A stretch of DNA of 64,000 nucleotides, taken from positions 1 to 64,000 of IMG/VR virus record IMGVR_UViG_3300044641_009805. The stretch is one strand, 5' to 3'. The notes under the pieces are model-generated. The model saw nothing but the letters and a program-made list of their open reading frames with translations, was not told the origin of the DNA and searched no databases. The translations under genes were made by a program, and so were the position numbers. Positions 1 to 51,310 of this stretch are shown here, one piece after another (the first letter of the stretch is position 1; every line of letters starts with the position of its first letter).

Positions 1-1
1 T

Positions 2-127
2 TTTGGTGTTTTTGTTGGAACAACCAAGAAGGGTTATCCAATGAGAAGATTGAAGATGAGGTTTTTGGTGGATGGTGTTGTTCAAGAGATACCAAATGGA
101 TTGATATTTAAACTTGAAGTTGTGTGA
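2..127 (+). CDS. 3' part of small hypothetical protein (truncated by window edge), probably same SH3-like family
   Basis: Open frame FGVFVGTTKK...FKLEVV* whose TGA overlaps the next ATG. Confidence 0.5.
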   Translation, partial: FGVFVGTTKKGYPMRRLKMRFLVDGVVQEIPNGLIFKLEVV

Positions 128-336
128 TGAAAACCGGGGATCTCATTTGGTACTGTGATGAACATAATTCCTTGAGGAATGATTTCCTTGGGATATACCT
201 AAGTTCCAGAGGAACCAAATGGAGTGATAAACATATGTTCCATAAGGTGATCCTGTGTGGGGGAGGAATAGATGAGTTTATTTTGAGGATTGGTGGAGAA
301 GGTAAGATAGAGGTGGTTCAGGGGTGGGAGGAATGA
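127..336 (+). CDS. small 'GDL' SH3/KOW-like hypothetical protein
   Basis: MKTGDLIW...IEVV; overlapping stop/start with neighbours. Confidence 0.7.
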   Translation: MKTGDLIWYCDEHNSLRNDFLGIYLSSRGTKWSDKHMFHKVILCGGGIDEFILRIGGEGKIEVVQGWEE

Positions 337-578
337 AAATTCGCCCAGGAGATTTGATGTTTTCCAATATAGGTACCAATGTTTGGGATACCCCTGGAGA
401 TCATTCTCCTTCCAGTGTTGTTGATCTTCTGGAGGAAAAACAACCGGTGATTGTGTTGGAAATTTACAAGAGAAAATACTATGAACACAACCTCACTGAA
501 ATAAAGGTTCTCACCCCCAATGGTGCGGTTGGGTGGGTTGCGATAGAGAAAGTGGATAAGGTTTGGGTGATAATGTGA
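333..578 (+). CDS. small SH3-like hypothetical protein
   Basis: MKIRPGDL...KVLTPNGAVGWV; ATGA overlap with the previous gene. Confidence 0.7.
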   Translation: MKIRPGDLMFSNIGTNVWDTPGDHSPSSVVDLLEEKQPVIVLEIYKRKYYEHNLTEIKVLTPNGAVGWVAIEKVDKVWVIM

Positions 579-835
579 TCCCCGGTGATTCAGTACGAGT
601 TCTCTCGGTAAAAAACCACCACAACCCTCTCCACCGGGTTTACGATATCCCCGATAAATTCCGTTGGGTAGGTGAATCCGTGGTACCACGTTCCTTCATC
701 TTCAAGGTTCCAGGAGGATCACTTGGAATCATTCTGGAAATCCAAGGTGAACAACTCAAGGTTCTGTTCCACGGTGGTTCCGTGGGGTGGATCAAGAGTG
801 AACTTGTGGAAGTTGTGGATATCCACACCCTGTGA
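575..835 (+). CDS. small SH3-like hypothetical protein
   Basis: (V)IPGDSV...KVLFHGGSVGWIKSELVEVV; GTGA overlap. Confidence 0.7.
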   Translation: MIPGDSVRVLSVKNHHNPLHRVYDIPDKFRWVGESVVPRSFIFKVPGGSLGIILEIQGEQLKVLFHGGSVGWIKSELVEVVDIHTL

Positions 836-867
836 AATCCTCCACCCACAGGTGATACAATATACCT
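832..867 (+). promoter_or_regulatory. leaderless sigma70-like promoter (GTGAAA-N18-TACAAT-N6-ATG)
   Basis: Matches the 36-nt promoter architecture repeated across the window. Confidence 0.6.
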
Positions 868-1092
868 ATGGAATACCATCCCGGTGATCTCATCCTGGTA
901 AAACCCGGAACCCATGTTCCACCAGGATCCAGATATTCCTCCGGAATCCTACTGGATGTACGAGAGGATCCGCGATTCACCCATTGGAATGGAATCCCCG
1001 AGGTATACCTAAAAATCCTCTGGGTGGATGGGCACCAATCAACCGAGGATATTCGAAAGGTATCACCCTACTATGAATTCATCCACCCTTAA
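868..1092 (+). CDS. small SH3-like hypothetical protein
   Basis: MEYHPGDLILV...KILWVDG. Confidence 0.7.
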   Translation: MEYHPGDLILVKPGTHVPPGSRYSSGILLDVREDPRFTHWNGIPEVYLKILWVDGHQSTEDIRKVSPYYEFIHP

Positions 1093-1336
1093 ACCCGGTT
1101 CACTTCTCAAGGTAAACCACCACGTGGTACCCGAACTCAGGTTCTACCGCGAACTCAAGGATGATATCCAATGGGATGATATCCAATGGGATGGAAAATC
1201 CAAACTATATCCCAACGATATCCTCATTTACCTCGGATCGGAAATGGTTCGTTTCGTTCTATTCGCCCATGTTTTCTCATCTTCCCAAGGTAAAACCGGT
1301 TACGCGGCTCTCACTTACCTCTCGGATCTCAAATGA
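1073..1336 (+). CDS. small SH3-like hypothetical protein
   Basis: MNSSTLKPGSLLKV...VFSSSQGKTGY; paralog of the next ORF. Confidence 0.65.
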   Translation: MNSSTLKPGSLLKVNHHVVPELRFYRELKDDIQWDDIQWDGKSKLYPNDILIYLGSEMVRFVLFAHVFSSSQGKTGYAALTYLSDLK

Positions 1337-1578
1337 AACACCCCGAATTTCCAGGAGGAACCCTTCTCAAGCTCCACGGTTCCCTTCTCTCCACCTCATT
1401 CCACAATGATGGTGTGGATAACCTATGGAATGGAGAACATCGAATCCATCCCCAGGAAATCCTCATTTCCCTGGGGAAAACCCTCAGGACTTTCACCCAC
1501 TACACCCTCGTTTTCTCTCCCACCCACAATCGGGCAGGTTACATTAGAACCGATCACATCTCGGAAATTCAACAGTGA
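1333..1578 (+). CDS. small SH3-like hypothetical protein
   Basis: FPGGTLLKL...VFSPTHNRAGYI. Confidence 0.65.
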   Translation: MKHPEFPGGTLLKLHGSLLSTSFHNDGVDNLWNGEHRIHPQEILISLGKTLRTFTHYTLVFSPTHNRAGYIRTDHISEIQQ

Positions 1579-1787
1579 AACCCGGTGATCTGGTGAGCAT
1601 CACCCACATCGTTGGGATTCGCATGGAAACCAAAACCACGGTAGGAATACTTCTCTCCTACGAACCGGTTGAACCCAACATGTACGATAACATCTACGAT
1701 CTTGAGATACTCACCACCGAAGGTAACGTAATCGGGCTCGGAATTTTTCACGGGGATAAACTGGAGGTGATCAATGAAGATTGGTGA
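1575..1787 (+). CDS. small SH3-like hypothetical protein
   Basis: MKPGDLVSI...LEVINE. Confidence 0.7.
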   Translation: MKPGDLVSITHIVGIRMETKTTVGILLSYEPVEPNMYDNIYDLEILTTEGNVIGLGIFHGDKLEVINEDW

Positions 1788-1986
1788 TCTACTCATCCCA
1801 CTCAACTCCTCCACATCCCACAAACATCATCCAGGATTGGTAACAGGTTTAACCGATAAAAGCTCCAACTTCAACGTGGTATACATCACCTGGAGGAATG
1901 GAGTAACCGATGGTTGGGATCACAACTTCGTTATCAAAAACTTTGAGGTTATCAGTGCACAAAACCCGAATCCCAAGTGTAAATGA
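1774..1986 (+). CDS. small SH3-like hypothetical protein
   Basis: MKIGDLLI...YITWRNG...FEVIS. Confidence 0.7.
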   Translation: MKIGDLLIPLNSSTSHKHHPGLVTGLTDKSSNFNVVYITWRNGVTDGWDHNFVIKNFEVISAQNPNPKCK

Positions 1987-1987
1987 T

Positions 1988-2143
1988 GTGATTCCAGGGG
2001 TACTGGTTCTCCACCATCTCACCCCAGAAATCGGAATTGTTCTCCGTGTAAATTGGGAGGTGGTTGAGTTACTATCGTGCAATGGATCGGTTGTTAGGTG
2101 GGAACTCGATTCATTTCGAAGCACCTATGAGATTCCACTATGA
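1988..2143 (+). CDS. small SH3-like hypothetical protein
   Basis: (V)IPGVLV...IGIVL; start uncertain (track ORF begins 1910). Confidence 0.5.
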   Translation: MIPGVLVLHHLTPEIGIVLRVNWEVVELLSCNGSVVRWELDSFRSTYEIPL

Positions 2144-2322
2144 AAAAAGGTGATCTGGTTCTAATCGATCATTATCATCCCAGAGATAAAACCTATGGGA
2201 TCTACATCAAGGATATTCAACTACGAGATCCTCGATACATACCATCATTTCCAACCTGTGAAATCATCACCTCCAATGGTTTACAGGTAATTGGAGTGGA
2301 AAGAATCCATGTACTCCTATGA
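2140..2322 (+). CDS. small SH3-like hypothetical protein
   Basis: MKKGDLVLI. Confidence 0.7.
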   Translation: MKKGDLVLIDHYHPRDKTYGIYIKDIQLRDPRYIPSFPTCEIITSNGLQVIGVERIHVLL

Positions 2323-2507
2323 AAATGAAACCCTCTGAGGTTCAGGTTGGAGATCTTATGATCACAACAGATTTTCTAGAAGCAGAGTTACAACTGGTAC
2401 TTCGAGTGGATCACAACCGGGATCTCGTTGAGATTTACAACACCAGGTTAGGAAAGGTGGAACACTATCGTTTATCCTGGGTTATGGGTTGTGAAAAGGT
2501 ATGTTAA
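2319..2507 (+). CDS. small SH3-like hypothetical protein
   Basis: VQVGDLMI. Confidence 0.65.
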   Translation: MKMKPSEVQVGDLMITTDFLEAELQLVLRVDHNRDLVEIYNTRLGKVEHYRLSWVMGCEKVC

Positions 2508-2959
2508 ACCTCTATTATTTCCTTTATCCAACTCCTAGGAATCGAAGGTAAGGATGTTCCTATTTCTCCATCCACACCATCAGGAAATTCATTCATAAAC
2601 TCATAGTAACCATCATCACCACTTCCAAACCTATCATCAGGAACCACATACTGGGGATTCAAATATTTCTTTGGAATTTCAACCCTAACCATCACCCCTT
2701 CATTGGTTACCCACCTAGGAGAATCATACCATCCCACGGTAAAATAAATTCCATGTGATTCCGATTGAAGTTTTAATCCAACCCTATCAATCGATTCCTT
2801 ATTACTCAATGGTGATTCATGGGTTACACGAAGAAAACCTCCACCCTCATCCGCAAGATGTTTTAAGGTGGAATAAAACCAAACCTTCTCAGGAATCCAA
2901 TCCTCTTCCTCCAGGTTTTCCCTAATCAATCTTCTCAAATCACCAAGTGAAATCTTCAT
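2504..2959 (-). CDS. LRxxIRE-leader protein with putative ADP-ribosyltransferase (Tpt1/KptA-like) fold
   Basis: N-term MKISLGDLRRLIRE; VTHES..SI..GL..GIYFT and C-terminal IPRSWI resemble ART/Tpt1 motifs (inference). Confidence 0.55.
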   Translation of the reverse strand: MKISLGDLRRLIRENLEEEDWIPEKVWFYSTLKHLADEGGGFLRVTHESPLSNKESIDRVGLKLQSESHGIYFTVGWYDSPRWVTNEGVMVRVEIPKKYLNPQYVVPDDRFGSGDDGYYEFMNEFPDGVDGEIGTSLPSIPRSWIKEIIEV

Positions 2960-2988
2960 GGGGTTAATTATACAATTGAGTTGATATT

Positions 2989-3210
2989 ATGGTTCCTGGT
3001 TCCCTAATCACTCCATCGTGTGCAACCGTTCACATGTATAAATCCATCGAGTTACACCTTGGAGAGTATGTTTCTTCATTTTCCTTCGGTGATTTTGGAA
3101 TCGTAATCGAAACTGGAATTTCACCTTGGGATGTTCAGTATCTAAAGGTTCTACTTCCAGATGGAAAAATTGGGTGGCTCCGCAGAGAAAAAGTGGAAGT
3201 TCTTCTATGA
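2989..3210 (+). CDS. small SH3-like hypothetical protein
   Basis: MVPGSLI...KVLLPDGKIGWL. Confidence 0.7.
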   Translation: MVPGSLITPSCATVHMYKSIELHLGEYVSSFSFGDFGIVIETGISPWDVQYLKVLLPDGKIGWLRREKVEVLL

Positions 3211-3383
3211 AAACCGGTGATCTGATCAAGTTCATCAACCTAACACCTTATGGTAAACGTGCGTACCTAGGGGTTGTTCTGGAATATCATGGAACTTGGG
3301 CGAAGATGTTGTGGTGTTCCGATGTTCATGAACAAATTCAAGATTCCATCATTGTTCCAAAACAATGGAAGGTTATCCAGTGA
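3207..3383 (+). CDS. small SH3-like hypothetical protein
   Basis: MKTGDLIKF; ATGA overlap. Confidence 0.65.
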   Translation: MKTGDLIKFINLTPYGKRAYLGVVLEYHGTWAKMLWCSDVHEQIQDSIIVPKQWKVIQ

Positions 3384-3577
3384 AACGGGGTGATCTTCTC
3401 CATTTTCCGGATGAACCACAATATGTTCACCGTGGAAAATTATACCTTGCCCTCAGGTTTTTCCAGTGGGAATCTCCACACAATGGGGTGGTATTCAATG
3501 AGGTTGATGTGTTGGAATTTGGAACCACCGAAATAAGAAAATTTAGGGTGGAACATCTCAAGGTGGTTGAACGGTGA
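3380..3577 (+). CDS. small SH3-like hypothetical protein
   Basis: (V)KRGDLLHF; GTGA overlap. Confidence 0.65.
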   Translation: MKRGDLLHFPDEPQYVHRGKLYLALRFFQWESPHNGVVFNEVDVLEFGTTEIRKFRVEHLKVVER

Positions 3578-3780
3578 AGATAGGTGATTTATTACTAATT
3601 AAAAACCCGTGTTGGTTGAGGGATGATCCTATTGGTGGTGGTAGTATTGAAAAATATCACCAAGGAACCATGGTAACTCTACTCCAGGAGGATGATCCGG
3701 AATTATACCACCACAAGGTTCTAACCCCGGATGGAAAAACCGGGTGGATCTTTAAGGATAACCTGGAGTTGATACAATGA
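3574..3780 (+). CDS. small SH3-like hypothetical protein
   Basis: MKIGDLLL...KVLTPDGKTGWI. Confidence 0.7.
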   Translation: MKIGDLLLIKNPCWLRDDPIGGGSIEKYHQGTMVTLLQEDDPELYHHKVLTPDGKTGWIFKDNLELIQ

Positions 3781-3992
3781 GTTTCATTGGTAAATTGGTT
3801 CGAATGGATCTTCCTCCACCTCATCCTCACTATGGTGAAACCGGTGTGATTATCCGTGTAAGGAAACCAACCGGTGGAACCGGAGATACCTACCGGGAAT
3901 CCAGGATTCGATATGATATTCTCGTTGGTGATGAGGTTCTTCACGATCAACTCTATGAATACTTTGTTGAATTGGATTTGAGGAAGGGATGA
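3777..3992 (+). CDS. small KOW/SH3-like hypothetical protein
   Basis: IGKLVR...YGETGVII. Confidence 0.65.
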   Translation: MSFIGKLVRMDLPPPHPHYGETGVIIRVRKPTGGTGDTYRESRIRYDILVGDEVLHDQLYEYFVELDLRKG

Positions 3993-4225
3993 GAATTGGT
4001 GATCTTGTTTGTACTCATGTGTTTGGTGTTGATGTATTCCTTGGTGTTGTATTGGATATCCAACCAATGAAGGATGTTTACAAGGATTCCAACCGTGGGG
4101 AGAAGATGAATTCGGTAAAGATCCTATGGGAAAAACCTGTACCAAGTTGGTTAGGTGAAGGAAGAATTTGTGAAGTAACTGATTCAATTCTTCAGGTGGT
4201 GGAACCGGAGGAATTGGATGAGTGA
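3989..4225 (+). CDS. small SH3-like hypothetical protein
   Basis: MRIGDLVC...GVVL...KILW. Confidence 0.7.
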   Translation: MRIGDLVCTHVFGVDVFLGVVLDIQPMKDVYKDSNRGEKMNSVKILWEKPVPSWLGEGRICEVTDSILQVVEPEELDE

Positions 4226-4415
4226 TAAACACCGTGGATTTTTACCTGGTGATCAGGTGAAGGTGGTTAATCCCTGGTACACCAGGAAACCCCCACAACT
4301 CGGTGTTGTTATCGAGGTGGTTCCTAGTGGTGGTGTGGTTAATTCTAACAGGATAAAATTGGTGGTTCCTGAAGGAATTACCTGGAGATGGGATCATGAG
4401 TGCGAGAGAATTTGA
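4218..4415 (+). CDS. small SH3-like hypothetical protein
   Basis: FLPGDQVKV...GVVIEV. Confidence 0.65.
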   Translation: MSDKHRGFLPGDQVKVVNPWYTRKPPQLGVVIEVVPSGGVVNSNRIKLVVPEGITWRWDHECERI

Positions 4416-4635
4416 GTTAGGTTCTCTGGTGAAATTGAACAGAACCTATATTCAACACCCATCCAAACCTATACTTGGTATCCTACTTGAATATGAAAAG
4501 TTTGATGATAACAATGGGGCCTTTGGAAAGGTTTCAAAAATAAAACTATTGTTATCCAATGGAATTTCCAAAGATTATTTCCTGTTCAAGGAGGATGAAT
4601 TGGAGATGGTAAATGAGATCAATATCCCCAGGTGA
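4396..4635 (+). CDS. small SH3-like hypothetical protein
   Basis: FELGSLVKL...GILLEY. Confidence 0.65.
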   Translation: MSAREFELGSLVKLNRTYIQHPSKPILGILLEYEKFDDNNGAFGKVSKIKLLLSNGISKDYFLFKEDELEMVNEINIPR

Positions 4636-4792
4636 TTTGGTGATTCATTCCTATGGAGTTCCAATGATCGGTATGGTGTTGGAGGTTAGAGGTGAATTTC
4701 CTTGGAGTTACCGAGTGGTGTGGAATTCAGGGGAGATAAAGGATTGTGATTTGGGTACCGTGAGGAGAGTGTGGTGTTATGAAGGTAGGTGA
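4613..4792 (+). CDS. small SH3-like hypothetical protein (59 aa, below the ORF-track cutoff)
   Basis: MRSISPGDLVIHSYGVPMIGMVLEV...YRVVWNSG read from the sequence. Confidence 0.65.
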   Translation: MRSISPGDLVIHSYGVPMIGMVLEVRGEFPWSYRVVWNSGEIKDCDLGTVRRVWCYEGR

Positions 4793-5027
4793 TTTGGTTA
4801 CTCCAGATCCTAAGGGATGTACCGATAGAGGTTTACATGTTTACCCATTTTGGGGTTCCAAGGATACCGGAATACCGGTACCGGTGGGAAGTTGGAAGTT
4901 GGGTGAGGTTGGTGTGTTACTGGAATCACTTGAGGTTCAAGGTGGAAATGGTTGTAAGGTGTTGTGTGGTAGTGTTTCAGGTTGGGTTTACCTATGTTAC
5001 CTGAAAATTGTGGATGATGAAAAGTAA
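4779..5027 (+). CDS. small SH3-like hypothetical protein
   Basis: MKVGDLVT...KVLCGSVSGWV. Confidence 0.7.
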   Translation: MKVGDLVTPDPKGCTDRGLHVYPFWGSKDTGIPVPVGSWKLGEVGVLLESLEVQGGNGCKVLCGSVSGWVYLCYLKIVDDEK

Positions 5028-5114
5028 AATGAGGTTTTACTTTGGTGTAGGAAAGGTAACTCCAGGGATACTTTTGTGAGGAGGAGAAACACCTCAGGAA
5101 TATGGCCTTTGGAT

Positions 5115-5297
5115 ATGCTCACCGGTGATTTGGTGTTGCGTGAGGATTTTGATGGGAGAAATATATTGGTGTTTATGGGATGGGTGGATAGGAACAAATA
5201 CCATGCCATGATTTATGATTATCAGGGTTATAGGCCATTTTGGTTCAACCCGAATTATTCGATGGAGAAATGGTGGATTATAAACCCGATAGAATAA
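5115..5297 (+). CDS. small SH3-like hypothetical protein
   Basis: MLTGDLVL. Confidence 0.6.
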   Translation: MLTGDLVLREDFDGRNILVFMGWVDRNKYHAMIYDYQGYRPFWFNPNYSMEKWWIINPIE

Positions 5298-5482
5298 CGG
5301 TTGGTGATCTGGTGAATTGGTATGAGAAGGAATTTGGGGCCAGTGTTGTTGGTTTGGTTTTAGGGGTGAAACCCCATACATTTTATCCGGAAGTTGATAT
5401 ATACTCAATTCTGGATTTTGATGGATTGAAGAGGGAGATATATTCCTCGTTGTGGTCGGAGTATAGGATATTGAATAGATGA
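5270..5482 (+). CDS. small SH3-like hypothetical protein
   Basis: ITVGDLVNW...GLVL. Confidence 0.65.
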   Translation: MVDYKPDRITVGDLVNWYEKEFGASVVGLVLGVKPHTFYPEVDIYSILDFDGLKREIYSSLWSEYRILNR

Positions 5483-5718
5483 AGAATGTGTGGAATAGTA
5501 GCGATAATGGAGGAAATCCACCTGAGGGGTTGGATGAAAAGGTGAGGAAGGGTGATCTGGTTAGGTTTACCCATTTTCCTTCATTTAATGGTTTTGTTGG
5601 GATTTACCTGGGGGTTGATGTTGAGGGTGGTAGATCCAAGTGGAAGTTTGCCACCGATAGGGGAATGGAATGGGTGGATCCAAAGGGGTTGTCACATTAT
5701 AGGGTTGATTTGGTGTGA
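5479..5718 (+). CDS. small SH3-like hypothetical protein
   Basis: VRKGDLVRF...GIYLG. Confidence 0.65.
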   Translation: MKNVWNSSDNGGNPPEGLDEKVRKGDLVRFTHFPSFNGFVGIYLGVDVEGGRSKWKFATDRGMEWVDPKGLSHYRVDLV

Positions 5719-5763
5719 AAATAAGCTGTGTAAAACAATCGCTGCGAGATGTAGATTTTACAC

Positions 5764-6762
5764 GTGAATGGAATTTTACCTCTAATCGGCCTGATAGGCT
5801 CTACACTTCTTTCAGTTTGGGCTGCTTTCAAATACCTGCTAACATCATCTTATCGGCTTGAGGATGGTGTATCAAAGCTTCTCCTGTCGCGTATTCGAAA
5901 AGAAAAGCCCCTATCCTGGATGTTCGGTGGAGAACATGTAACACCGCCACGATTTCCAGAGCTGTGGGAAGGTTTTCTGTTGTTGGACAAGATTCCCCTG
6001 TATTTCCACCGCAACGAGAGGTTGATGACTGCCGGGTGGAAATCAAAGGAATCGATCTCAACCCTGTCGTTCTTCAGGTGGAATAGGTCACAAGTGGATA
6101 GGTTGTTGGCCCATGTGAACACAGGTGAATCGATACAGGTTTCAGCTCTTACACCCCACGGAACCGATAGGCTTGGTGAACTTGAACCTGGCGGTGAAGG
6201 TGAGTTGTACCTGAATCCTGGGAGCTACGAGGATATTGAGGAGGATGTGAAGAGGGTTTTGTCAGGAGAGTTGAATAAAACTGGTGCTCTTCTCTATGGA
6301 TCTCCAGGAAATGGAAAGACTCGATTCGTTCGTTACCTGTCAAAGAAGTATTCGTTGCCAATCAATGTTGTTTACCTCCTTCCAGACTACAACAACCTCG
6401 ACATCAGTCTCATGTTCTCCAATATTCCTCAACGATCAATCGTTCTTCTCGAGGACTTCGACAACCTCTTCGACGGGCGGAAGTGCACCATTCCAAACGA
6501 CCAGATAAAGTTTACCTTCGACTCTATCATCAATGCCCTCGATGGGGTACACAACGATTATCGACAGGTGGTATTCATCATGACCGTGAATGATATTGGA
6601 AAGGTGGATGACAGCATCAAAGAGAGGCCATCAAGGTTCAAGTTTGTCAAGGAATTTGGTCCGCCAAAACTTGAGGTGCGGGAGAGAATTTTGGGTGATA
6701 GGAACCTTGCTATCATTGCTGAAGGATTGTCATTAGATAAGGTGGTTCATTTTAAAAATTAA
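5764..6762 (+). CDS. membrane-anchored AAA+ ATPase (BCS1-like)
   Basis: N-terminal TM helix; Walker A GSPGNGKT, Walker B LLEDFD, INALDG, sensor TVN, RPSRF. Confidence 0.8.
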   Translation: MNGILPLIGLIGSTLLSVWAAFKYLLTSSYRLEDGVSKLLLSRIRKEKPLSWMFGGEHVTPPRFPELWEGFLLLDKIPLYFHRNERLMTAGWKSKESISTLSFFRWNRSQVDRLLAHVNTGESIQVSALTPHGTDRLGELEPGGEGELYLNPGSYEDIEEDVKRVLSGELNKTGALLYGSPGNGKTRFVRYLSKKYSLPINVVYLLPDYNNLDISLMFSNIPQRSIVLLEDFDNLFDGRKCTIPNDQIKFTFDSIINALDGVHNDYRQVVFIMTVNDIGKVDDSIKERPSRFKFVKEFGPPKLEVRERILGDRNLAIIAEGLSLDKVVHFKN

Positions 6763-6806
6763 AAAGAAGACATTTGTAAATGTGATTGATATTTAGGCTG
6801 CAATAT

Positions 6807-7154
6807 ATGAGAAAAGTTAATAAGCCTTGGGGTTACGAATTGATCTGGGCAGAAAATCCAAAATATCTTGGTAAGATTCTTTACGTCATGGCTGGTAAAC
6901 GTTTATCCTTGCAATACCACAAAGTGAAGGATGAAACAATTCTTGTTAAGAAAGGCACCATGAAGCTAGAGTTTGGAAATTCGAAGACCGGTCTCCAAGA
7001 GATTGAAATGAATGAAGGAGACTCCTTCCACATCTCACCTGGGCTTCTTCACAGGATGGCTGCCGTCACTGACTGCGAAGTCATCGAGGTCTCGACTTCC
7101 GAGCTAGCAGACGTGGTCAGAGTAGAAGATGATCATGGTCGTGTGAAACCCTGA
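6807..7154 (+). CDS. cupin domain protein (mannose-6-phosphate isomerase type II C-terminal-like)
   Basis: KPWGYE, RLSLQYHKVKDET, HRM, IEVST, DVVRVEDDHGR motifs. Confidence 0.85.
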   Translation: MRKVNKPWGYELIWAENPKYLGKILYVMAGKRLSLQYHKVKDETILVKKGTMKLEFGNSKTGLQEIEMNEGDSFHISPGLLHRMAAVTDCEVIEVSTSELADVVRVEDDHGRVKP

Positions 7155-8702
7155 TCACTGGTCTTCGAACCATGAGATTGAAAAAGTAGCTTCTGAAGTG
7201 TTCTTATTCGTTTTGGCTGCTATTGTCAATATCTCGCCGCTCGTGAGGAAGAAATTTTCTGCCTGTATGGTCAAGATGGTAGCCTCGTTCGCACCAACTA
7301 TGAAGCTTTTGACGAGTTGAGTATTAGGTCCGATGCTTATTGAAGTCGCAGACAGATCAGCTGCAGCTATTGATTTATTTGTATCAACGTGTTGAAAGTT
7401 GACAGGACCTCCGAGCACGGCATTCTTGTATACATAGACTTCCGTCAAAATTGTGCTCGTGGCATTGCCTGTGTCCGTACCGACCGATATGTTGAAAAGA
7501 TCTATCTCGCCGTAATTACATTGACCCAGGAAGTTTCTGTTGGCACGTATGGTCAACACAGGTGTGAGCGTGGTGTCAAGATCAAGTGCTGCCCCGACGC
7601 GAGCAGAACCCGTAGCAAATGCTGGTCCTATGTTACGAATCACCAATCCTTCAGCGAAAACTCCTGCTGAAGCACCTTTGATGGTGACAGGTGTAGCCAA
7701 CGATCCGCTGTTGTAGACACCCCACTTGGCGGTCATCTGGGGATTTCTGAGGACAGTGGTGGACCTGCTGTTGGCGTTCTTTATCATGTGGCACCCAGCC
7801 AACAGGCCCGTTTCGGAGTTCTCCACCGCAAAGAATGCATTGCCGAACCCGAGATACTGGAAGCCGACGGAGTAAACATTTCCATACCTCGGGTTCAAGG
7901 CAAATCTCGATTCACCTGTTCCGTCCATCTTATCGATGTTCCACTGGGACTGTGAGATGAATGTCTCGACCGGTAGTTCTCCCGTTTGAACCACCGCCGT
8001 TGTGGCTATCTGAGTTGCTCCGTTGAACAGAGAAAAAGTTCCTCCTATGGGCCCTGGGCGTCTCGATACGAAGAAGACGGTTCCATCGATGGATTCAGCA
8101 TCCCAGCCTGAACCGACCTGTGAGTAATCTGCCTGTGATAATTGGTAAGAAGTCTGGTTGGCGGAACTACCGCCATTTATCGCGACAGTTCTCGTGGCCC
8201 CTCCGAGGGTGACCGTGATGGTGGCAGCTCCGACTGGGGGTACCGTGATGGAAAAGCTCCTGATTTCTCGTTTGGATCTCTCGCGGTGAAGTATGCCGAA
8301 CTCATTATTCCGTTGAGCGAAGAAGTAACCGGTCTCTTCGTTACCGATCCCTGCCAGCTGAAGCGTGTTGGGTGCACCTGGATCGAAGATCGCAGTCATC
8401 CTACACATGGAGCCCTGTCCAGGGCGATACTTGAGACTTCGAGACAGCCTCACCTCAGCGGATCCTGATGTAGATGTTCCTGAAGAGCTCGTCATGATTC
8501 CTAGTGAAGCGGCCACAAATGCACCAGTCCCAGCTGACGATGTGGTCCATTGTACTGGATTTACGGTGTAGATGAACGCAGCCTGAGCCGTGGGGTGTGC
8601 TTCGGACACAAGGGGAGACCCGAAAGGACCGACAGCGTTAGCGTTGATGCTTCCCTCGCTGGCAAATAAAGATTTCTTACCAATCGTCGTAAATCCTGAC
8701 AT
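7155..8702 (-). CDS. putative virion structural protein (beta-rich)
   Basis: 515 aa Ser/Thr/Gly-rich; YRPGQG and FQYLGFG segments seen in phage structural proteins; GGAG RBS. Confidence 0.55.
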   Translation of the reverse strand: MSGFTTIGKKSLFASEGSINANAVGPFGSPLVSEAHPTAQAAFIYTVNPVQWTTSSAGTGAFVAASLGIMTSSSGTSTSGSAEVRLSRSLKYRPGQGSMCRMTAIFDPGAPNTLQLAGIGNEETGYFFAQRNNEFGILHRERSKREIRSFSITVPPVGAATITVTLGGATRTVAINGGSSANQTSYQLSQADYSQVGSGWDAESIDGTVFFVSRRPGPIGGTFSLFNGATQIATTAVVQTGELPVETFISQSQWNIDKMDGTGESRFALNPRYGNVYSVGFQYLGFGNAFFAVENSETGLLAGCHMIKNANSRSTTVLRNPQMTAKWGVYNSGSLATPVTIKGASAGVFAEGLVIRNIGPAFATGSARVGAALDLDTTLTPVLTIRANRNFLGQCNYGEIDLFNISVGTDTGNATSTILTEVYVYKNAVLGGPVNFQHVDTNKSIAAADLSATSISIGPNTQLVKSFIVGANEATILTIQAENFFLTSGEILTIAAKTNKNTSEATFSISWFEDQ

Positions 8703-15418: not shown

Positions 15419-15528
15419 TGAAAAAGCACTACTTAAGCATAATCAATGAAACCAGGTGATTTGGGCATGTGACCGCCATGTTTGTTGGCATCTTGTGCAA
15501 TCATACTTTTTGTGTAGGTGGTTCACGC

Positions 15529-18050: not shown

Positions 18051-18302
18051 ATGGAAATGTTTAGAAAACCTACATGGATTGAGTTGCGAGTTCCGCCTCC
18101 TGCAGCTGGGATGGTTTTCATCCACGTTGCAAGACCTGATCGGCCATTAATGATAACGGATATTTTAGAGGATGAGATACAGCGTGTAGACGTGGCGGGC
18201 GTCACGGCACCTTGGGGGTCCATTGAAGACTGGCGAGATGAGGTTCGCCATAGAAATATAGAGGTTGTTTATGACCCAAAGCATTACATTCAAAAAAGGT
18301 GA
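18051..18302 (+). CDS. hypothetical protein
   Basis: ORF with GAGGGG RBS in operon. Confidence 0.55.
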   Translation: MEMFRKPTWIELRVPPPAAGMVFIHVARPDRPLMITDILEDEIQRVDVAGVTAPWGSIEDWRDEVRHRNIEVVYDPKHYIQKR

Positions 18303-18507
18303 TTTGGTTCTCTACGATAAGTTTGGATCTTATCATGAGTCAGTATCCCCTTCTGTCTTCATTGACGATTTTGCTGTAGGAATTATTCTTGAAATTGTAG
18401 AGGAAAAAAGCGGAGGTGCTGACAACGCTTTCGCAGAGATCATAAAGGAAGATGGGTCAAAAGGTTTCTTTTCTTTATCTTATCTAAATTCGTTCGAACA
18501 GCCATAA
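18271..18507 (+). CDS. small SH3-like hypothetical protein
   Basis: FKKGDLVLY...GIILE...DGSKGFF. Confidence 0.6.
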   Translation: MTQSITFKKGDLVLYDKFGSYHESVSPSVFIDDFAVGIILEIVEEKSGGADNAFAEIIKEDGSKGFFSLSYLNSFEQP

Positions 18508-27678: not shown

Positions 27679-27711
27679 GTTGTTATGTATACCTCTCCCT
27701 GCTCCAGTGTA

Positions 27712-29022: not shown

Positions 29023-30191
29023 CCTTTGGTCAAAGACACGCCTGTACCACCCATCAATGTTCTAAAAGCAGGCCATACGTCTGCCTTCTCTACCACTCTA
29101 ACGGTCTTTAATTTTGGTCCGACGAGAGGTTGCATCGTTGTATGGAGCTTGTCTTGATTGTAATACCTTTCAGGTTCAATCTCGCAGTAACCGTACAGCT
29201 GACAGATGTCTTTTAGCTCACGTGCGAGATTTATGAACTTTTCATTATCAGATGAGAAGTTATCGCCATCGGACGCCTGAAACGTGTAGATGTTCCACGA
29301 TGATGGATGAAATCGTTTATCTATCTCTTGTAACGTCAGCTCCAAAGCGCTGGATGCAATCGTTCCTCCGCTGGTCGCTTCCGTGAAGAATTCTTTCTCT
29401 TCGACCACCCTCGCCTCAGTGTCATGCGTGATGAAAACGACCTCGACCGTTTCGTACTTGGACCTGATGAACTGGTAGAGTAAAAAGAAGAAAGATCTTG
29501 CCAGGAACTTCTTGTCTTGCGTCATAGACCCGCTGACGTCCATCAAGAAGAATATGACTGCGTTGGTGCAAGGTTTCGGTGTGACCTTGAAGTGTCTGTA
29601 CCGCAGATCGTCTTCGTGGAAAGAGAAGGTTTCTCCTTCTTCGGCTTTTTCAGGGTCAAATCCAGCCGCCTTCATTCTCTTGATTCGAGCGATTGCAGAC
29701 TTCTTCTTGTCCAAGCGTGGAAGAATACCGTCAGTACGATACCCATTTCTCTTTAATTTATCAGCTGATATGTTCGACAGTTGACGTCTCTGCAACTCAG
29801 GAAGCTGTAGTTCAGCGAAGAGATACTCTGCGAGTTCTTCCAACGTGATCTCAACGTCGTAATATTCTTCTCCTTTTTGATCACTGGCCTTCTGCGGTTT
29901 TCCTTGACCTTGCTGTTGTCCCTCACCGATTTTTTGGCCTCGTTTGACATCCTTACCAGGAGCCGATCCAACCTGCTTATTGCCGTTGTTGTCGCCGTAG
30001 ACAAACTTGTATTCCTTAATTCCTCTAACAGGAACTCTGAACTTTTTCTTGCCATCTTGACCTATGATGCTCTCATCAGCGACAATATGATGAATACCAT
30101 CTCGAATTGCCTTCTCGATTTTCTGTTTGTGACGACGTCGATCGGAGGCGGATCGATCAGCGATTGTCTTATGTTCCTTAAAGATCGACAT
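29019..30191 (-). CDS. yeaH: YeaH/YhbH (DUF444) vWA-like protein
   Basis: DRRRH, DDLRYR, AVIFFLMDVSGSM, SGGTIASSA, WNIYTFQASDGDN. Confidence 0.92.
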   Translation of the reverse strand: MSIFKEHKTIADRSASDRRRHKQKIEKAIRDGIHHIVADESIIGQDGKKKFRVPVRGIKEYKFVYGDNNGNKQVGSAPGKDVKRGQKIGEGQQQGQGKPQKASDQKGEEYYDVEITLEELAEYLFAELQLPELQRRQLSNISADKLKRNGYRTDGILPRLDKKKSAIARIKRMKAAGFDPEKAEEGETFSFHEDDLRYRHFKVTPKPCTNAVIFFLMDVSGSMTQDKKFLARSFFFLLYQFIRSKYETVEVVFITHDTEARVVEEKEFFTEATSGGTIASSALELTLQEIDKRFHPSSWNIYTFQASDGDNFSSDNEKFINLARELKDICQLYGYCEIEPERYYNQDKLHTTMQPLVGPKLKTVRVVEKADVWPAFRTLMGGTGVSLTKG

Positions 30192-37334: not shown

Positions 37335-38957
37335 ATGTCTTTTGAACCCCATCCTCCTAAATCTAATAATTGCGTGTTATTTTCTAGCGATGCTAGAAAA
37401 AAGCTATATGCAGGTCTTAGCATAGCAGCTGAAGCAGTAAGCTGCACTTTAGGTCCGAATGGAAAAACAGTCTTAATCCAAAATGGAAATGATTCTCCGA
37501 TCATTACAAAAGACGGCGTAACGGTCAGCAAATCCGTAAAACTAGATGATCCAGTAGAGATGATGGGAGTAAGGCTACTGAGAGAAGCAGCGTCTCAAAC
37601 CAATGACACAGCTGGCGATGGAACGACTACCTCGACCGTCCTTACACATGCTTTAGTAAAAAATGGATTAAATTTGTTAGAGGCGGGTTACAACGCGAAA
37701 AAATTAGTAGAAGGAATGGACATCGCGATCAAATTAGTGACTGATGCCGTTGTTTCTCAGGCACATCCAGTCGAAACGACTGAAGAAATTGCGCAAATTG
37801 GTACCATTTCAGCCAATGGTGATAAGAAAATAGGTGAGCTAATTTCAGCTGCAATGGAAAAAGTTGGAAGAGATGGAATCATTACTGTAGAAGATGCTAA
37901 GGGAATGGCGACCACTCTTGACGTGGTTGACGGAATGCAGTTTGATAGGGGTTATTTAAGTCCTTACTTCGTTACGAACAACGAAAAGATGCATGCTTCT
38001 TATAATGATGCATATGTTCTAATCACAGATAAAAAAATATCTGTATTAAAGGATCTTGTTCCTATTCTTGAATCTGTGGTAAATTCTAGAAAACCTCTTC
38101 TCATCATTGCTGATGATGTTGACGGAGAAGCATTACAAGGGTTAGTTCTTAATAGAGTGAAATCTCAATTACCGATTGTTGCCATTAAGTCTCCTGGATT
38201 TGGAACTTCAAAAGATGAATATCTTATTGATATTTCAAAACTGACAGGAGCTAAGCTGGTTTCTAGCTCTACTGGTTTGTCTTTGGACAAAGTAAAACTA
38301 TCAGATCTGGGAACTGCAAAGAAGTTTGTTGTCGATGCAAAAACCACTACGATCGTTGGTCCTTCATCTGCGAGAGAGCAGGTCCAAGAGCATGTTTCTG
38401 ATTTAAAAGTGAGGCTTAATGATGTAACAATAAGCTCTCTTGAAATGAATAACCTAAGAACCAGAATTGCTCGGCTCGCTTCTGGGGTTGCTGTCGTACG
38501 AGTCGGCGGGGCCACCGAGATGGAAATGATCGAACGCAAATATAGAATAGAAGATGCTCTTCATGCGACACGCGCAGCGACTGAAGAAGGAATAATTCCG
38601 GGCGGAGGAACAGCTTTATACACGGCATCGATAGCAGCCAGAAAAGCTACAAAAAATGTCTCTTATGAAAGGGACGTGTTGGCCGGAATTGAAATGGTTT
38701 TTAAATCTTGCGTAGAACCATTGAGGAGAATTGCTCATAATAGTGGCAAATCGCCAGACGTCATTGAAGAATGTATGAGTAAGAATGTCAATAACAACTT
38801 CGGATATGATGCTTCTTCAGGCGAGTTTGTCGATCTTGTGGCGGCTGGTATTATCGACCCAGTCAAGGTTACTAAAATGGCTCTTAAGAATTCTTCTTCA
38901 GTTGCTAGACTGTTTTTAACTTTAGACGCTGTCTTGGTCAATGGAGAAACTGCTTGA
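37335..38957 (+). CDS. groEL: chaperonin GroEL
   Basis: TLGPNG, ITKDGVTV, AGDGTTT, GMQFDRGYLSPYF, EEGIIPGGG, IIDPVKV. Confidence 0.95.
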   Translation: MSFEPHPPKSNNCVLFSSDARKKLYAGLSIAAEAVSCTLGPNGKTVLIQNGNDSPIITKDGVTVSKSVKLDDPVEMMGVRLLREAASQTNDTAGDGTTTSTVLTHALVKNGLNLLEAGYNAKKLVEGMDIAIKLVTDAVVSQAHPVETTEEIAQIGTISANGDKKIGELISAAMEKVGRDGIITVEDAKGMATTLDVVDGMQFDRGYLSPYFVTNNEKMHASYNDAYVLITDKKISVLKDLVPILESVVNSRKPLLIIADDVDGEALQGLVLNRVKSQLPIVAIKSPGFGTSKDEYLIDISKLTGAKLVSSSTGLSLDKVKLSDLGTAKKFVVDAKTTTIVGPSSAREQVQEHVSDLKVRLNDVTISSLEMNNLRTRIARLASGVAVVRVGGATEMEMIERKYRIEDALHATRAATEEGIIPGGGTALYTASIAARKATKNVSYERDVLAGIEMVFKSCVEPLRRIAHNSGKSPDVIEECMSKNVNNNFGYDASSGEFVDLVAAGIIDPVKVTKMALKNSSSVARLFLTLDAVLVNGETA

Positions 38958-39172
38958 TTTTACCTAGATTTTCCAAGGGAGACCTTGTCAAATTTAAAAT
39001 GAAAAGTCCTGAAAAAAATGGTATTGTTATAGACGTACACCATTCTAATTCATGCAAAAGCAAACACGTCGAGCACATGTCCAATAGCTATTCTCAAGTT
39101 TACTATGTTCTTGTAGACGGAACTTCAGTTGAAGGACCATACTTTTTTGATGAGCTATTGAGGGTGGTTTGA
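38954..39172 (+). CDS. small SH3-like hypothetical protein
   Basis: FSKGDLVKF..GIVIDV. Confidence 0.55.
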   Translation: MILPRFSKGDLVKFKMKSPEKNGIVIDVHHSNSCKSKHVEHMSNSYSQVYYVLVDGTSVEGPYFFDELLRVV

Positions 39173-48278: not shown

Positions 48279-48376
48279 ACCCCCGCACCCACCCGGGCGG
48301 AGACAAATTCCAGAACTCCTCCATCCTCCATAATACATATAGACGATCCCGCGGCGGGAGAAAGACAAACACCCAC

Positions 48377-49377: not shown

Positions 49378-49599
49378 TCAGGTTCGGTCTGCTTTTCGTG
49401 CTAGTCGACATGAGCCCTTGTGGATCCAGGCGGTCTTTCCTGAGGGGAGGATGATGTTGAGGTAGAAGCCGTGGATGGAGACGACGAGGGCGGTGAGGTG
49501 GTCTTCCGTGGTGAGGGCAGCAGGAGAGGAGTAGGCCGCTGGGTATAGGGAGGCGTGGGGTGATATGGTGACGAGGTCGCCGAGGCCTACTTCGGTCAT
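49378..49599 (-). CDS. small SH3-like hypothetical protein
   Basis: GLGDLVTI..ILPSGKTAWI. Confidence 0.6.
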   Translation of the reverse strand: MTEVGLGDLVTISPHASLYPAAYSSPAALTTEDHLTALVVSIHGFYLNIILPSGKTAWIHKGSCRLARKADRT

Positions 49600-49609
49600 G
49601 TGAGTGCAA

Positions 49610-49809
49610 CTAGTTGCAAGGTGGGGTCAGTTCGTCGAGGTGGATGAGGTCGATGGCCGATTCCCATCGGGGTCCTGTGGGGAAGAGGACCTCCACGTCG
49701 GCGATGGGGTGGGTGGTGACCAGTTGGATGACGATTCCCGTGTCGAGGGGTTTGTTGTGCCAGTCGATCTTGACGACTTGGGAGCCTGGGAGAAGTCTCG
49801 TATCTTCAT
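49610..49809 (-). pseudogene. SH3-like gene with apparent 1-nt frameshift near its start
   Basis: ATG (MKIRD) lies in a different frame from LLPGSQVV..GIVIQL..VEVLFP. Confidence 0.4.
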
Positions 49810-50006
49810 GTCTCCCCGCTCGAGTGGACTGTGAAGGTGGGTGCCCATTCCCAGAAGGTGTCCCCGTGTGGGGAGAGGACGTGGACCATCGTGTCTGATC
49901 CATTGGGTGATTCCACCTTGATGACCGGGTAGACCGCCGATCGATCTCGTTCATTCCAGGTCAGTACGCCGGGGCGGAAGGTGACCATGTCTCCCACGCG
50001 GATCAT
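49806..50006 (-). CDS. small SH3-like hypothetical protein
   Basis: MIRVGDMVTF; ATGA overlap with the vWA gene stop. Confidence 0.6.
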   Translation of the reverse strand: MIRVGDMVTFRPGVLTWNERDRSAVYPVIKVESPNGSDTMVHVLSPHGDTFWEWAPTFTVHSSGET

Positions 50007-51310
50007 CGCCAGGCTCCGGACTTGGGGGTCGTGGGATCTAGGGAGATGGTGATCTCGTTGGTGGGGAATTCCAGCTTGTGGCCGGGGGAGATGACCCAGC
50101 CGCGCTTGACTCGGGAGGGGCCGGGGGCAGAGCACTCACCGTCGGTCATGATGAGCATGCCGTCCCACTTGCCCCGGTTCTTCGGGTCGTTGACGATCTT
50201 GGTGGGGGCGTTGAAGTCAGTACCTCCGCCTCGGACCCGCTTGGCGTCCACGTTGCTTCCCTTCTTCCATTCGAAGGCATCGCGGAGGTCTGCTGCGCAG
50301 TCGAAGGGGAGGATGGTGACCGTGACCTTCTTCGTGAGGGTGGCGAGTTCGTTGAAGAAGAGGGCGAGCTGGCGGTCATCCACGCTTCCGGATTGGTCGA
50401 TGGCGATGAGGAGCTTGGCGACGTAGCCACGCTTGACGCCGGGGTGGATGTAGGGGTAGCGCTTGTTGATACGCTTGATGGTGGTGGTGCGTTCACCGCG
50501 GGCGATGTTACCGATGAATTGGCGGAGAACGTTGCGCCAGTCGACGAGCTTGCTGACCGAGCGGCGGATCTCTTCGCGGAGTTCGGAGGGGATGTTGCCC
50601 CATCCGTTCGCCTGGGAGTCGGCGTGCTTCGTGGCCTTCTCCACCATGCCGTTGACCTTAGAGGCGACCATCTCCTTCTGTTCATCGGTCAGCTCGTCCC
50701 AGGCCGAGTGGTCATCGAAGGAGTCGAGGCCGCCGAAGGGGTCACCGTCGGGGTGAGGGGTGCCCTTGGCGTTGTCACCCTTCTTGCGTTCCTCCTCAAC
50801 CTTGTCCTTGAGCTTCTCGAAGTACCACTCCGAGGATTGCCCCTTGGGGAAGTCAGCGATGAGTTGGGCGATGGGCATGGCGGCTTTCTCCTCCGCCGTC
50901 CACTCGCGACCTTCGGGACCGGCAGGGAAGACGCCTGGCATGAGGCAACCGGCCGGCAGTGTCATGTTCGAGTGGCCGGAGATGATCGAGTTGATGGCGA
51001 GGTCCGTCGCCACGTTCCACATCTTCGCCGGCTTCTTGCGGCGGGTCGTGAGGTGGCAGAAGATGAGGTGGTAGAACTCGTGGGTGAGGACGCCACGGAT
51101 CTCCTGGTCGCTCATCGGCCGGAAGAACTCAGGGTTCCAGTACAGGGTGATGTCGTCGAACTCCGGGTCGAAGGCCACCGCCGCCGTGGGCATGTCGAGG
51201 GTGGGCGTCTTCCGGATGTGCCGGCTCAGTTCCGCAAAGAACGGCGTGTCCTGGAGGAACGAGATGAGGTGCCGGTCCAGGTTGAAGTCTGTGTCCGTGT
51301 GGCTGAACAT
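50003..51310 (-). CDS. HExxH metallopeptidase-like + vWA domain protein (DUF2201-type)
   Basis: LTHEFYH, WNVATDLAIN, DDHSAW, IDQSGSV, GGGTDF, MTDG. Confidence 0.85.
   Translation of the reverse strand: MFSHTDTDFNLDRHLISFLQDTPFFAELSRHIRKTPTLDMPTAAVAFDPEFDDITLYWNPEFFRPMSDQEIRGVLTHEFYHLIFCHLTTRRKKPAKMWNVATDLAINSIISGHSNMTLPAGCLMPGVFPAGPEGREWTAEEKAAMPIAQLIADFPKGQSSEWYFEKLKDKVEEERKKGDNAKGTPHPDGDPFGGLDSFDDHSAWDELTDEQKEMVASKVNGMVEKATKHADSQANGWGNIPSELREEIRRSVSKLVDWRNVLRQFIGNIARGERTTTIKRINKRYPYIHPGVKRGYVAKLLIAIDQSGSVDDRQLALFFNELATLTKKVTVTILPFDCAADLRDAFEWKKGSNVDAKRVRGGGTDFNAPTKIVNDPKNRGKWDGMLIMTDGECSAPGPSRVKRGWVISPGHKLEFPTNEITISLDPTTPKSGAWR

Follow-up and report, generated by a model that had tools for sequence, protein, structure and literature searches.

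A large array of overlapping mini-genes predicted to encode SH3-like barrels in an uncultured lake-water phage

A large uncultured lake-water phage carries about 57 small, mostly overlapping genes, each of which encodes one free-standing domain that is predicted to be an SH3-type β-barrel with variable loops. We are not aware of a description of this family, whose members look like a set of binding modules. The genes were first seen in the window, which is the 64,000-nucleotide stretch (positions 1 to 64,000) of IMG/VR record IMGVR_UViG_3300044641_009805 that was analyzed. This window is the start of a 278-kb myovirus contig, and about 31 additional members reside at the opposite end of this contig (266395-278435), such that both contig ends lie inside arrays. 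The preliminary description, which reported about 24 translationally coupled mini-genes at 127-5718, is confirmed as an observation, although the array is larger than was reported.

An array of mini-genes at both contig ends

The ORF list for the window includes an unbroken run of plus-strand ORFs from 124 to 5718. With curated start codons, we count 24 co-directional genes of 58 to 90 aa, plus a 5′-truncated member at 2-127, and one minus-strand ORF (2504-2959) interrupts the run. The sequence motifs noted initially are evident in the family alignment (A1), wherein G is invariant in M-K-x-G-D-L-V and is followed by G-[IV]-[IV]-L, K-V-L-x-x-x-G, G-W, and L-E-V-V. The features are as follows, with E values from the family HMM unless stated otherwise.

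2..127 (+), C-terminal half of a family member cut by the contig start; open frame ending in K-L-E-V-V
127..336 (+), family gene, 69 aa, beginning MKTGDL; E 7e-15; included as a row in A1
333..578 (+), family gene, 81 aa; ATGA overlap with the previous gene (junction -4); E 4e-16
563..835 (+), family gene, 90 aa, with a long RT loop; E 1e-11
832..870 (+), promoter-like site GTGAAA-N17-TACAAT, with the ATG 6 nt after the -10 (possible leaderless start)
868..1092 (+), family gene, 74 aa; E 2e-10
1073..1336 (+), family gene, 87 aa (start uncertain); E 4e-11
1333..1578 (+), divergent family gene, 81 aa; E 2e-4
1575..1787 (+), family gene, 70 aa (GTG start, GTGA overlap); E 6e-15
1774..1986 (+), family gene, 70 aa; 14-nt overlap in which the upstream stop lies in the Gly-Asp codons GGTGAT
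1955..2143 (+), family gene, about 62 aa (start uncertain); E 6e-12; nearest paralogue at genome 277273-277458, 52% identity
2140..2322 (+), family gene, 60 aa; E 7e-13
2319..2507 (+), family gene, 62 aa; E 3e-9
2504..2959 (-), non-family ORF of 151 aa, a variable insertion; no Pfam or PHROG hit, absent from all related loci, and skipped in a strain variant (joint 2504->2998)
2947..2991 (+), second promoter-like site, GTGAAA-N16-TATACAAT
2989..3210 (+), family gene, 73 aa; E 7e-13; weak Pfam SH3_YKFC_2nd match, E 0.006
3207..3383 (+), family gene, 58 aa; E 3e-11
3365..3577 (+), family gene, 70 aa; E 5e-12
3574..3780 (+), family gene, 68 aa, the member that was folded; absent as a whole gene in a strain variant (joint 3571->3777)
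3777..3992 (+), family gene, 71 aa (divergent); E 3e-7
3989..4225 (+), family gene, 78 aa; E 2e-8
4218..4415 (+), family gene, 65 aa; E 8e-13
4396..4635 (+), family gene, 79 aa; E 8e-12
4613..4792 (+), family gene, 59 aa; E 4e-8
4779..5027 (+), family gene, 82 aa; E 4e-11
5076..5297 (+), candidate member, 73 aa, by motif only (T-G-D-L-V); E 6.2
5240..5482 (+), borderline member, 80 aa; E 0.06, and 2.9e-5 with the A1 profile
5479..5718 (+), family gene, 79 aa, last of the array; E 4e-11
5764..6762 (+), flanking AAA+ ATPase with a hydrophobic N-terminus; Pfam AAA, E 4e-11
15446..15472 (+), 8-codon stub of a family gene start (M-K-P-G-D-L-G-M-stop)
18271..18507 (+), scattered family gene, 78 aa; E 4e-11
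38954..39172 (+), scattered family gene just after GroEL (TTG start assumed); E 4e-8
49378..50135 (-), three overlapping family ORFs in the GC-rich segment; E 5e-10, 1e-8 and 8e-12

To assess whether the family is statistically real, an iterated HMM was run against all 2,970 stop-to-stop ORFs of at least 40 aa in six frames of the genome. This search yielded 58 unique hits at E<0.01, each of which lies in the coding frame, whereas the same ORFs reversed gave no hit (best E of 0.089). Among the 24 genes of the window array, 21 are solid (E 1e-7 to 1e-16), the gene at 1333-1578 is weak by HMM but is predicted to fold as an SH3 barrel, the gene at 5240-5482 is borderline, and that at 5076-5297 rests on the GDLV motif alone, which does not establish its membership. 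Of the scattered members listed initially, those at 18271 and 38954 and three minus-strand genes at 49378-50135 are confirmed, as is the stub at 15446, but the ORF at about 32420 is not significant (E 0.29).

The initial statement that most genes are linked by ATGA or GTGA overlaps is about half right. Among 22 junctions in the window, 10 are the 4-nt NTGA overlap, 10 are longer overlaps (8-58 nt) and two are short gaps, such that 20 of 22 overlap; 41 of the 47 junctions examined in total do so. About 55 members sit in arrays at the two contig ends, which probably abut. An N-terminal half beginning M-K-P-G-N-L-V is present at 278387-278435, although this half and the C-terminal half at 2-127 are one base out of frame across a T5 run.

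The genes carry translation signals. Shine-Dalgarno-like 5-mers precede 21 of 55 starts, compared with 10% of internal control positions (p=3e-8). The promoter-like motif has 10 matches in the genome versus 1.3 in shuffled sequences, and seven of these lie at the two contig ends that hold the arrays, although this sigma-70-like motif, located ahead of the sub-operons, is only a consensus match. Two sequencing runs labeled as RNA-Seq look like DNA and provided no usable RNA data, and expression early in infection remains an inference.

A predicted SH3 barrel that most closely resembles bacterial SH3b domains

AlphaFold2 models the 3574-3780 protein as an SH3 barrel with pLDDT 93.9 and pTM 0.81. 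Its best structural matches are bacterial SH3b cell-wall-binding domains (TM 0.81 by Foldseek; VIA Z 8.6-10.2), including those of the Clostridium phage phiSM101 endolysin (Z 10.2), NlpC1, LytB and DPP-VI. The very divergent protein from 1333-1578 was modeled with pLDDT 80.2 and SH3 strand order, and all of its top 50 Foldseek hits are SH3 domains, although this second model used the family alignment, which leans towards the family fold. The predicted fold is a five-stranded barrel with an RT loop, an n-Src loop, a distal hairpin and a 3-10 turn before the last strand. The five core strands are conserved and have low entropy, whereas the RT loop (4-41 residues) and n-Src loop (7-21 residues), which form the ligand-binding face in SH3 domains, vary widely in length and sequence.

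The C-terminal domains of the phiSM101 endolysin (4krt) and Bacteroides DPP-VI (3npf, 4r0k, 3pvq) share the fold and strand order (Z 10.2 and 9.1, TM 0.8), as well as the sequence habit K-V-x-x-x-x-G-x-x-G-W-[IV] in the distal hairpin. However, none of 56 members scanned reaches a Pfam SH3b gathering score (the best is 16.7 bits against a cut-off of 27.4), only five weak SH3 hits appear in all, and no PHROG hit was obtained for the eight members searched. In a search of 1.84 billion proteins, the best hits of the family profile (E 1e-17 to 1e-10) are multi-SH3_3 cell-wall hydrolases with 5-16 SH3_3 repeats, but these scores are sums over repeats and the single stretches are short. The profile also matches the Pex13 SH3 domain at E 0.015.

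The resemblance to SH3b raises the possibility that the mini-proteins bind cell walls or glycans. They would be released at lysis or act on peptidoglycan precursors, and might mask cell debris or receptors so that progeny phage are not lost, or modulate wall synthesis. We consider this unlikely, because the proteins begin directly with strand 1 (M-K-x-G-D-L-V), have no N-terminal hydrophobic segment or signal peptide, and are single domains with no fusion to a lytic domain. Furthermore, the phage's own endolysin uses PG_binding_1 rather than SH3b, and one conserved polymer does not call for about 57 paralogues at 25% identity with different loops.

A role as nucleic-acid-binding small barrels, in the manner of KOW, Sm/Hfq, Sso7d or chromo-like domains, appears less likely still. 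Such proteins would act as transcription or translation modulators, or as DNA-packaging or chaperone proteins. In favor of this view, NusG KOW domains match at Z 7.7-7.8, small SH3-fold proteins next to phage polymerases have been suggested as nucleic-acid binders (PMC7824862), and a fusion of a Zn-ribbon and a family domain exists at 2582-2929 of L001 (L numbers designate individual loci). However, SH3b scores higher than KOW, no member has a Pfam KOW, LSM or Hfq hit, and neither model has the N-terminal helix found in Sm proteins. The isoelectric points are also mixed (median 5.9 with a wide spread, and only 9 of 56 above 8), unlike the uniformly basic Sso7d-type binders.

Eukaryotic SH3 peptide-recognition domains and engineered Fyn-SH3 binders (Fynomers; 4afz and 4afq appear among the fold hits) are likewise small rigid barrels whose RT and n-Src loops set specificity, and these are the loops that vary in the phage family. 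The similarity is lower than to SH3b, and the conserved proline-peptide-binding residues of SH3 domains (the ALYDY and WW motifs) are not visible in the alignment.

Old paralogues with turnover of whole genes

The paralogues are highly diverged (median 25% identity), and adjacent genes are no more alike than distant ones (p=0.17). Orthologues between phages (45-86% identity) are closer than paralogues within one phage, and those in related contigs exhibit dN/dS of 0.07-0.5, which indicates purifying selection. Small indels between strains stay in frame. Thus, the suggestion that the family is diversifying needs to be changed if it is taken to mean ongoing positive selection or recent tandem amplification. 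What changes is gene order, which is shuffled in L007 and L008, and gene presence, wherein indels that remove or add exactly one gene distinguish a 90-96% identical relative and variants in lake and estuary runs, with breakpoints at gene borders.

Among 112 IMG/VR loci fetched with one pattern, at least 74 carry members, with arrays of up to 22 genes. The profile finds 734 representative clusters, and the Atlas clusters are viral and unnamed. We found no such arrays in cultured phages.

The turnover of whole genes is compatible with arrays that are largely selfish or neutral cargo, wherein small cassettes would spread between phages by recombination at their conserved ends, perhaps helped by homing endonucleases, with little benefit to the phage. 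A repeat-rich 263-aa ORF that looks like a homing endonuclease, and other strain-specific insertions, lie within the arrays, and the codon at the motif glycine is biased towards GGT (p=4e-4). This explanation seems improbable given the clear purifying selection on the orthologous proteins, the preservation of the core fold across about 57 old paralogues, the persistence of the family in many phage lineages with GC from 35% to 58%, and the retention of about 12 kb of coding capacity.

Another possibility, which we regard as the most doubtful, is that the proteins are adaptors or substrates for the neighboring, putatively membrane-anchored AAA+ ATPase or for the phage chaperonin, and would deliver chosen host proteins for unfolding or degradation. 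An AAA+ gene flanks the arrays here and in at least four related loci (L011, L012, L095 and L098), one member sits directly after GroEL, and SspB, a ClpX adaptor, is a small β-barrel. However, most array-bearing loci fetched show no AAA gene within reach (8 of about 100), and linkage alone is weak evidence.

A possible repertoire of intracellular binders

Several known systems offer partial precedents. Among lineage-specific expansions of small domains in jumbo phages, Bacillus phage G carries about 35 copies of a Zn-ribbon (PMC7824862), which similarly represent tens of paralogues of one small domain in a very large phage, although the phage family described here has a different fold, more copies, tight operon packing with overlapping genes, and documented gene-by-gene turnover between strains. 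The early host-takeover gene clusters of large lytic phages (the SPO1 terminal-redundancy module, T4 early regions) and anti-defense gene clusters also include many small, densely packed, co-directional genes whose content varies between relatives, but these clusters hold unrelated proteins whereas here nearly all genes are one family. The ankyrin, BTB/kelch and MORN multigene families at the genome ends of poxviruses and giant viruses are binding-domain families expanded in arrays that vary between strains and are thought to deal with host factors. In contrast, the family reported here belongs to a bacterial virus, its single-domain proteins are about 70 aa, and there is no sign of recent amplification.

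The interpretation offered in the preliminary description is partly supported. An expanded family of small β-barrel proteins is consistent with the predicted folds, whereas the proposal that these are anti-defense proteins or decoy binders expressed at entry remains conjecture. Our analyses establish a multigene family of at least 57 members, its packing into short operons with overlapping stop and start codons, a single free-standing domain per gene that is predicted as an SH3 barrel with conserved strands and variable loops, old paralogues each kept by purifying selection, and differences between phages in gene content and order. All statements on binding, targets, expression and function are inferred from these features. 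We tentatively favor a model wherein each member is a cytoplasmic binding module with its own target, most likely a host protein or peptide. This target class is a guess, because the structural neighbors bind peptidoglycan rather than proteins. The purifying selection on orthologues and the great age of the paralogues fit any conserved function and not an arms race in particular. No known anti-defense gene or marker was found beside the arrays.

In this model, the stop-start overlaps and Shine-Dalgarno sequences, often laid down by the conserved C-terminal Glu-Val-Val codons (GAGGTGGT), would couple translation along each operon. The phage would make the set during infection to block or redirect host functions, including defense systems, and the gain, loss and exchange of whole genes between phages would adjust the set to the local host population.

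Genome context of the array

The window is the first part of a single 278,435-bp contig with 42.6% GC, an IMG/VR virus record that is classed as linear and estimated to be 84% complete. The contig encodes a portal, at least two tail-sheath paralogues, a baseplate wedge protein, SbcCD and 13 tRNAs, and is therefore a jumbo myovirus. Additional features of the genome, as well as genes that flank or are embedded in the arrays, are listed below. L001 and L006 denote segments of this same contig that were numbered separately, where L001 position 16354 corresponds to genome position 278354.

Features of the contig outside and within the arrays of family genes
Window 25744-30191 (minus strand): a complete PrkA/DUF444 (YeaH-like)/SpoVR operon.
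Window 37335-38957 (plus strand): a GroEL-type chaperonin.
Window 48000-62000: a segment with 55-60% GC against about 42% elsewhere, holding 12 of the 13 tRNA genes and three family members on the minus strand.
Genome 180737-187076 (L006 4737-11076): two adjacent tail-sheath paralogues of about 1,020 aa; a third ORF of similar size lies just upstream at 177637-180684.
Window 5764-6762: an AAA+ ATPase with a hydrophobic N-terminal segment that flanks the array.
Window 2504-2959 (minus strand): a 151-aa ORF inside the array with no Pfam or PHROG match, absent from all related loci and skipped in a strain variant, and so a variable insertion.
Genome 274937-275728 (L001 12937-13728, minus strand): a 263-aa ORF with about eight W-E-D-P-E-[YF] repeats, whose N-terminus resembles GIY-YIG homing endonucleases, although Pfam does not confirm this.
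L001 8290-8833 and 12035-12552: a two-gene module (about 95 aa plus about 100 aa, neither detected by the family HMM) that is present twice within the upstream array and conserved in up to 11 related loci.
Genome 266915-267325 (L001 4915-5325): a half-size EamA-like membrane protein (136 aa, Pfam E 1.6e-9) that is embedded in the array and conserved inside the arrays of six related loci.
L001 2582-2929: a 115-aa protein that joins a Cys-rich, Zn-ribbon-like N-terminus to a C-terminal part that reads like a family domain (S-G-D-L-A through to a terminal H-V-H-E-I), and that may be a fusion form of the family.

By portal protein, the nearest cultured relatives are Microcystis phage Mel-JY01 and Flavobacterium phage immuto, at only about 40% identity. 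Near-identical DNA occurs in lake, freshwater and estuary metagenomes from 19 studies. Among these data, the two runs labeled RNA-Seq, examined as Logan contigs only, look like DNA. The psbA gene is absent, and there is thus no sign that this is a cyanophage.

Family genes at both ends of the contig

A continuous run of plus-strand ORFs extends from 124 to 5718. When starts are chosen next to the N-terminal motif, this run comprises 24 genes of 58-90 aa and a truncated gene at 2-127, interrupted only by the minus-strand ORF noted above. An alignment of 56 members (A1) has one invariant glycine, located in M-K-x-G-D-L-V, along with the blocks G-[IV]-[IV]-L, K-V-L-x-x-x-G, G-W and L-E-V-V.

To assess the extent of the family, an iterated HMM was run against every stop-to-stop ORF of at least 40 aa in six frames. 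This search finds 58 unique members at E<0.01, all in the expected frame, whereas the same ORFs reversed give none. The tandem array of about 24 genes reported in the preliminary description is real. Of its 24 genes, 21 are solid, the gene at 1333-1578 is weak by HMM but is predicted to fold like the rest, the gene at 5240-5482 is borderline, and the gene at 5076-5297 rests on the motif alone and is not supported as a member by the HMM. Of the scattered members that had been proposed, those at 18271, 38954 and 49378-50135 (minus strand) are confirmed, as is the 8-codon stub at 15446, but the ORF near 32420 is not significant.

The array is much larger than could be seen from the window. About 31 more members lie at 266,395-278,435, the other contig end. 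The last 49 bases of the contig encode the N-terminal part of a member, whereas window 2-127 encodes a C-terminal part. These two halves (window 1-127 and genome 278354-278435, or L001 16354-16435) look like one family gene and together would make a protein of normal length, but their frames differ by one base across a run of five T at the junction. We take this as a sign that the two ends abut, and the contig may be circular or permuted despite its classification, although closure is not proven. Such an arrangement would give one super-array of about 17.8 kb with about 55 members and some 15 other genes.

The genes are tightly packed. Of 47 junctions between adjacent members, 26 are 4-nt NTGA overlaps, 15 are longer overlaps, and 6 are gaps, and TGA serves as the stop in 46 of 55 genes. 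A recurrent 14-nt overlap places the upstream stop in the Gly-Asp codons (GGTGAT) of the next gene, which explains the frequent tails N-E-T-R and N-E-D-W seen here and in database relatives. GGT is favored at that glycine (p=4e-4). Shine-Dalgarno-like 5-mers precede 21 of 55 starts, compared with 10% of internal positions (p=3e-8), and many of these are the codons of the conserved C-terminal E-V-V.

Several of the few intergenic gaps in the arrays carry the motif GTGAAA-N17-TAnnAT, with the ATG six bases after the -10 element. There are 10 matches in the genome against 1.3 in shuffles, and 7 lie at the two contig ends that hold the arrays. This pattern, which is a consensus match only, suggests a sigma-70-like promoter class and short operons whose first gene is leaderless. 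Locations of the motif and of a related element are as follows.

Promoter-like elements
Window 832-870 and 2947-2991: GTGAAA-N17-TAnnAT followed after 6 nt by ATG.
Genome 269369, 271818, 273128, 273999, 276007 and 278350: the same recurrent motif.
58990, 60341 and 73972-74740: a related GATATACT-N6-ATG element.

The T4-type late promoter TATAAATA is under-represented genome-wide (7 found against 26 expected) and tells nothing about timing.

Predicted fold, variation and turnover

AlphaFold2 applied to alignment A1 gives an all-beta model with a pLDDT of 93.9. Foldseek and VIA-align place this model with bacterial SH3b cell-wall-binding domains, wherein the phiSM101 endolysin scores Z 10.2, NlpC1, LytB and DPP-VI score Z 9.1-9.7, and TM is about 0.8. 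Eukaryotic SH3 domains follow, and KOW is lower. A very divergent member (1333-1578) gives the same predicted strand order (pLDDT 80), and its 50 best matches are all SH3 domains, although this prediction used the family alignment, which biases it somewhat. These structural neighbors raise the possibility that the proteins bind the cell wall or glycans as SH3b domains do, and a role in nucleic-acid binding is a further alternative.

Sequence searches indicate that the family is unannotated. Pfam scans of all 56 members and PHROGs searches with 8 members gave nothing above threshold. Among 1.84 billion representatives, the best hits of the family profile are proteins with many SH3_3 repeats, followed by hundreds of unnamed 50-100 aa proteins that start M-K-P-G-D-L-V, with 734 clusters in all reaching E<=1e-3. 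Atlas neighbors are all viral "hypothetical proteins."

The strands are conserved across the family, whereas the RT loop ranges from 4 to 41 residues and the n-Src loop from 7 to 21. The pI is mixed (median 5.9), and there is no signal peptide or membrane segment. The paralogues are old, with a median identity of 25% and a maximum of 52% for the closest pair, and neighbors are no more alike than distant members (p=0.17). These findings reject recent tandem ("accordion") duplication. Orthologues in related metagenomic contigs are 45-86% identical, with dN/dS of 0.07-0.5.

Gene order and content differ among relatives. Order is scrambled in the more distant relatives, represented by loci L007 and L008. 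A relative that is 90-96% identical in shared blocks (IMGVR_UViG_3300022752_000015) lacks exactly the genes at 277,455-277,646 and 276,429-276,647, and it also lacks the repeat-rich 263-aa ORF. Contigs from lake and estuary runs show the same pattern, wherein one joint removes exactly the gene at 3574-3780 and another removes the minus-strand ORF at 2504-2959. Loose ends at gene borders read on into other family genes, and small indels are multiples of three. One alternative view of the arrays is that they are selfish cassettes. Another is that the proteins are adaptors for the neighboring AAA+ ATPase, homologues of which (52-68% identity) lie beside arrays in the related loci L011, L012, L095 and L098.

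Distribution and interpretation

Because no stretch of alignment A1 is conserved enough to serve directly as a query for related loci, we used one degenerate DNA pattern, which fetched at least 112 IMG/VR loci. Of these 112, 74 carry members, with up to 22 co-directional genes in 10 kb. Their GC content ranges from 35% to 58%, and the contigs reach 298 kb. No member was found in the cultured phages examined: blastn of window 1-8000 against 50,697 phage records gave no match, tblastn of one family member against the same records gave no match, and the family profile did not match Microcystis phage Mel-JY01 or Flavobacterium phage immuto. Literature searches, which were limited to open-access papers, found no description of the family. 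The nearest precedent is the expansion of Zn-ribbon proteins to roughly 35 copies in Bacillus phage G.

The existence of the family, its predicted fold, the packing of its genes, the selection acting on them and their turnover are established by these analyses, whereas function is inferred. A fixed barrel with variable RT and n-Src loops is the design of peptide- and protein-binding SH3 domains. Dozens of old, individually conserved paralogues suggest dozens of different targets, and the inferred cytoplasmic location suggests that these are host proteins. We therefore tentatively favor a repertoire of intracellular binders used for host takeover or counter-defense over the rivals considered above, although expression early in infection, binding partners and phenotypes are all matters of inference. 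The interpretation in the preliminary description, wherein an expanded and diversifying family of small beta-barrels possibly provides anti-defense proteins or decoy binders expressed at entry, is partly supported.

A more far-reaching possibility, which we consider unlikely but consistent with the evidence, is that large environmental phages carry an inherited, exchangeable library of SH3-scaffold binders. In this view, dozens of fixed-framework proteins with different RT and n-Src loops would each neutralize a different host protein, defense systems included. The library would be re-assorted between phages one gene at a time by recombination at the conserved gene ends, namely the 5′ M-K-P-G-D-L-V codons and the 3′ Glu-Val-Val codons that double as the Shine-Dalgarno site. 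This would make it a cassette system without an integrase.

About 12 kb of this phage, and comparable stretches of many other uncultured large phages from lakes, estuaries and the sea, is spent on one unannotated protein family, which makes it one of the largest paralogue expansions in a bacterial virus of which we are aware. Even if the function proves mundane, a named profile for this family would annotate hundreds of "hypothetical" clusters in viromes. The single-gene turnover between near-identical strains offers a way to study how phage accessory repertoires are reshuffled. If the members are specific binders, they would be a new class of host-takeover or counter-defense factors, and they would also be a natural example of the fixed-scaffold, variable-loop design used in engineered SH3 binders.
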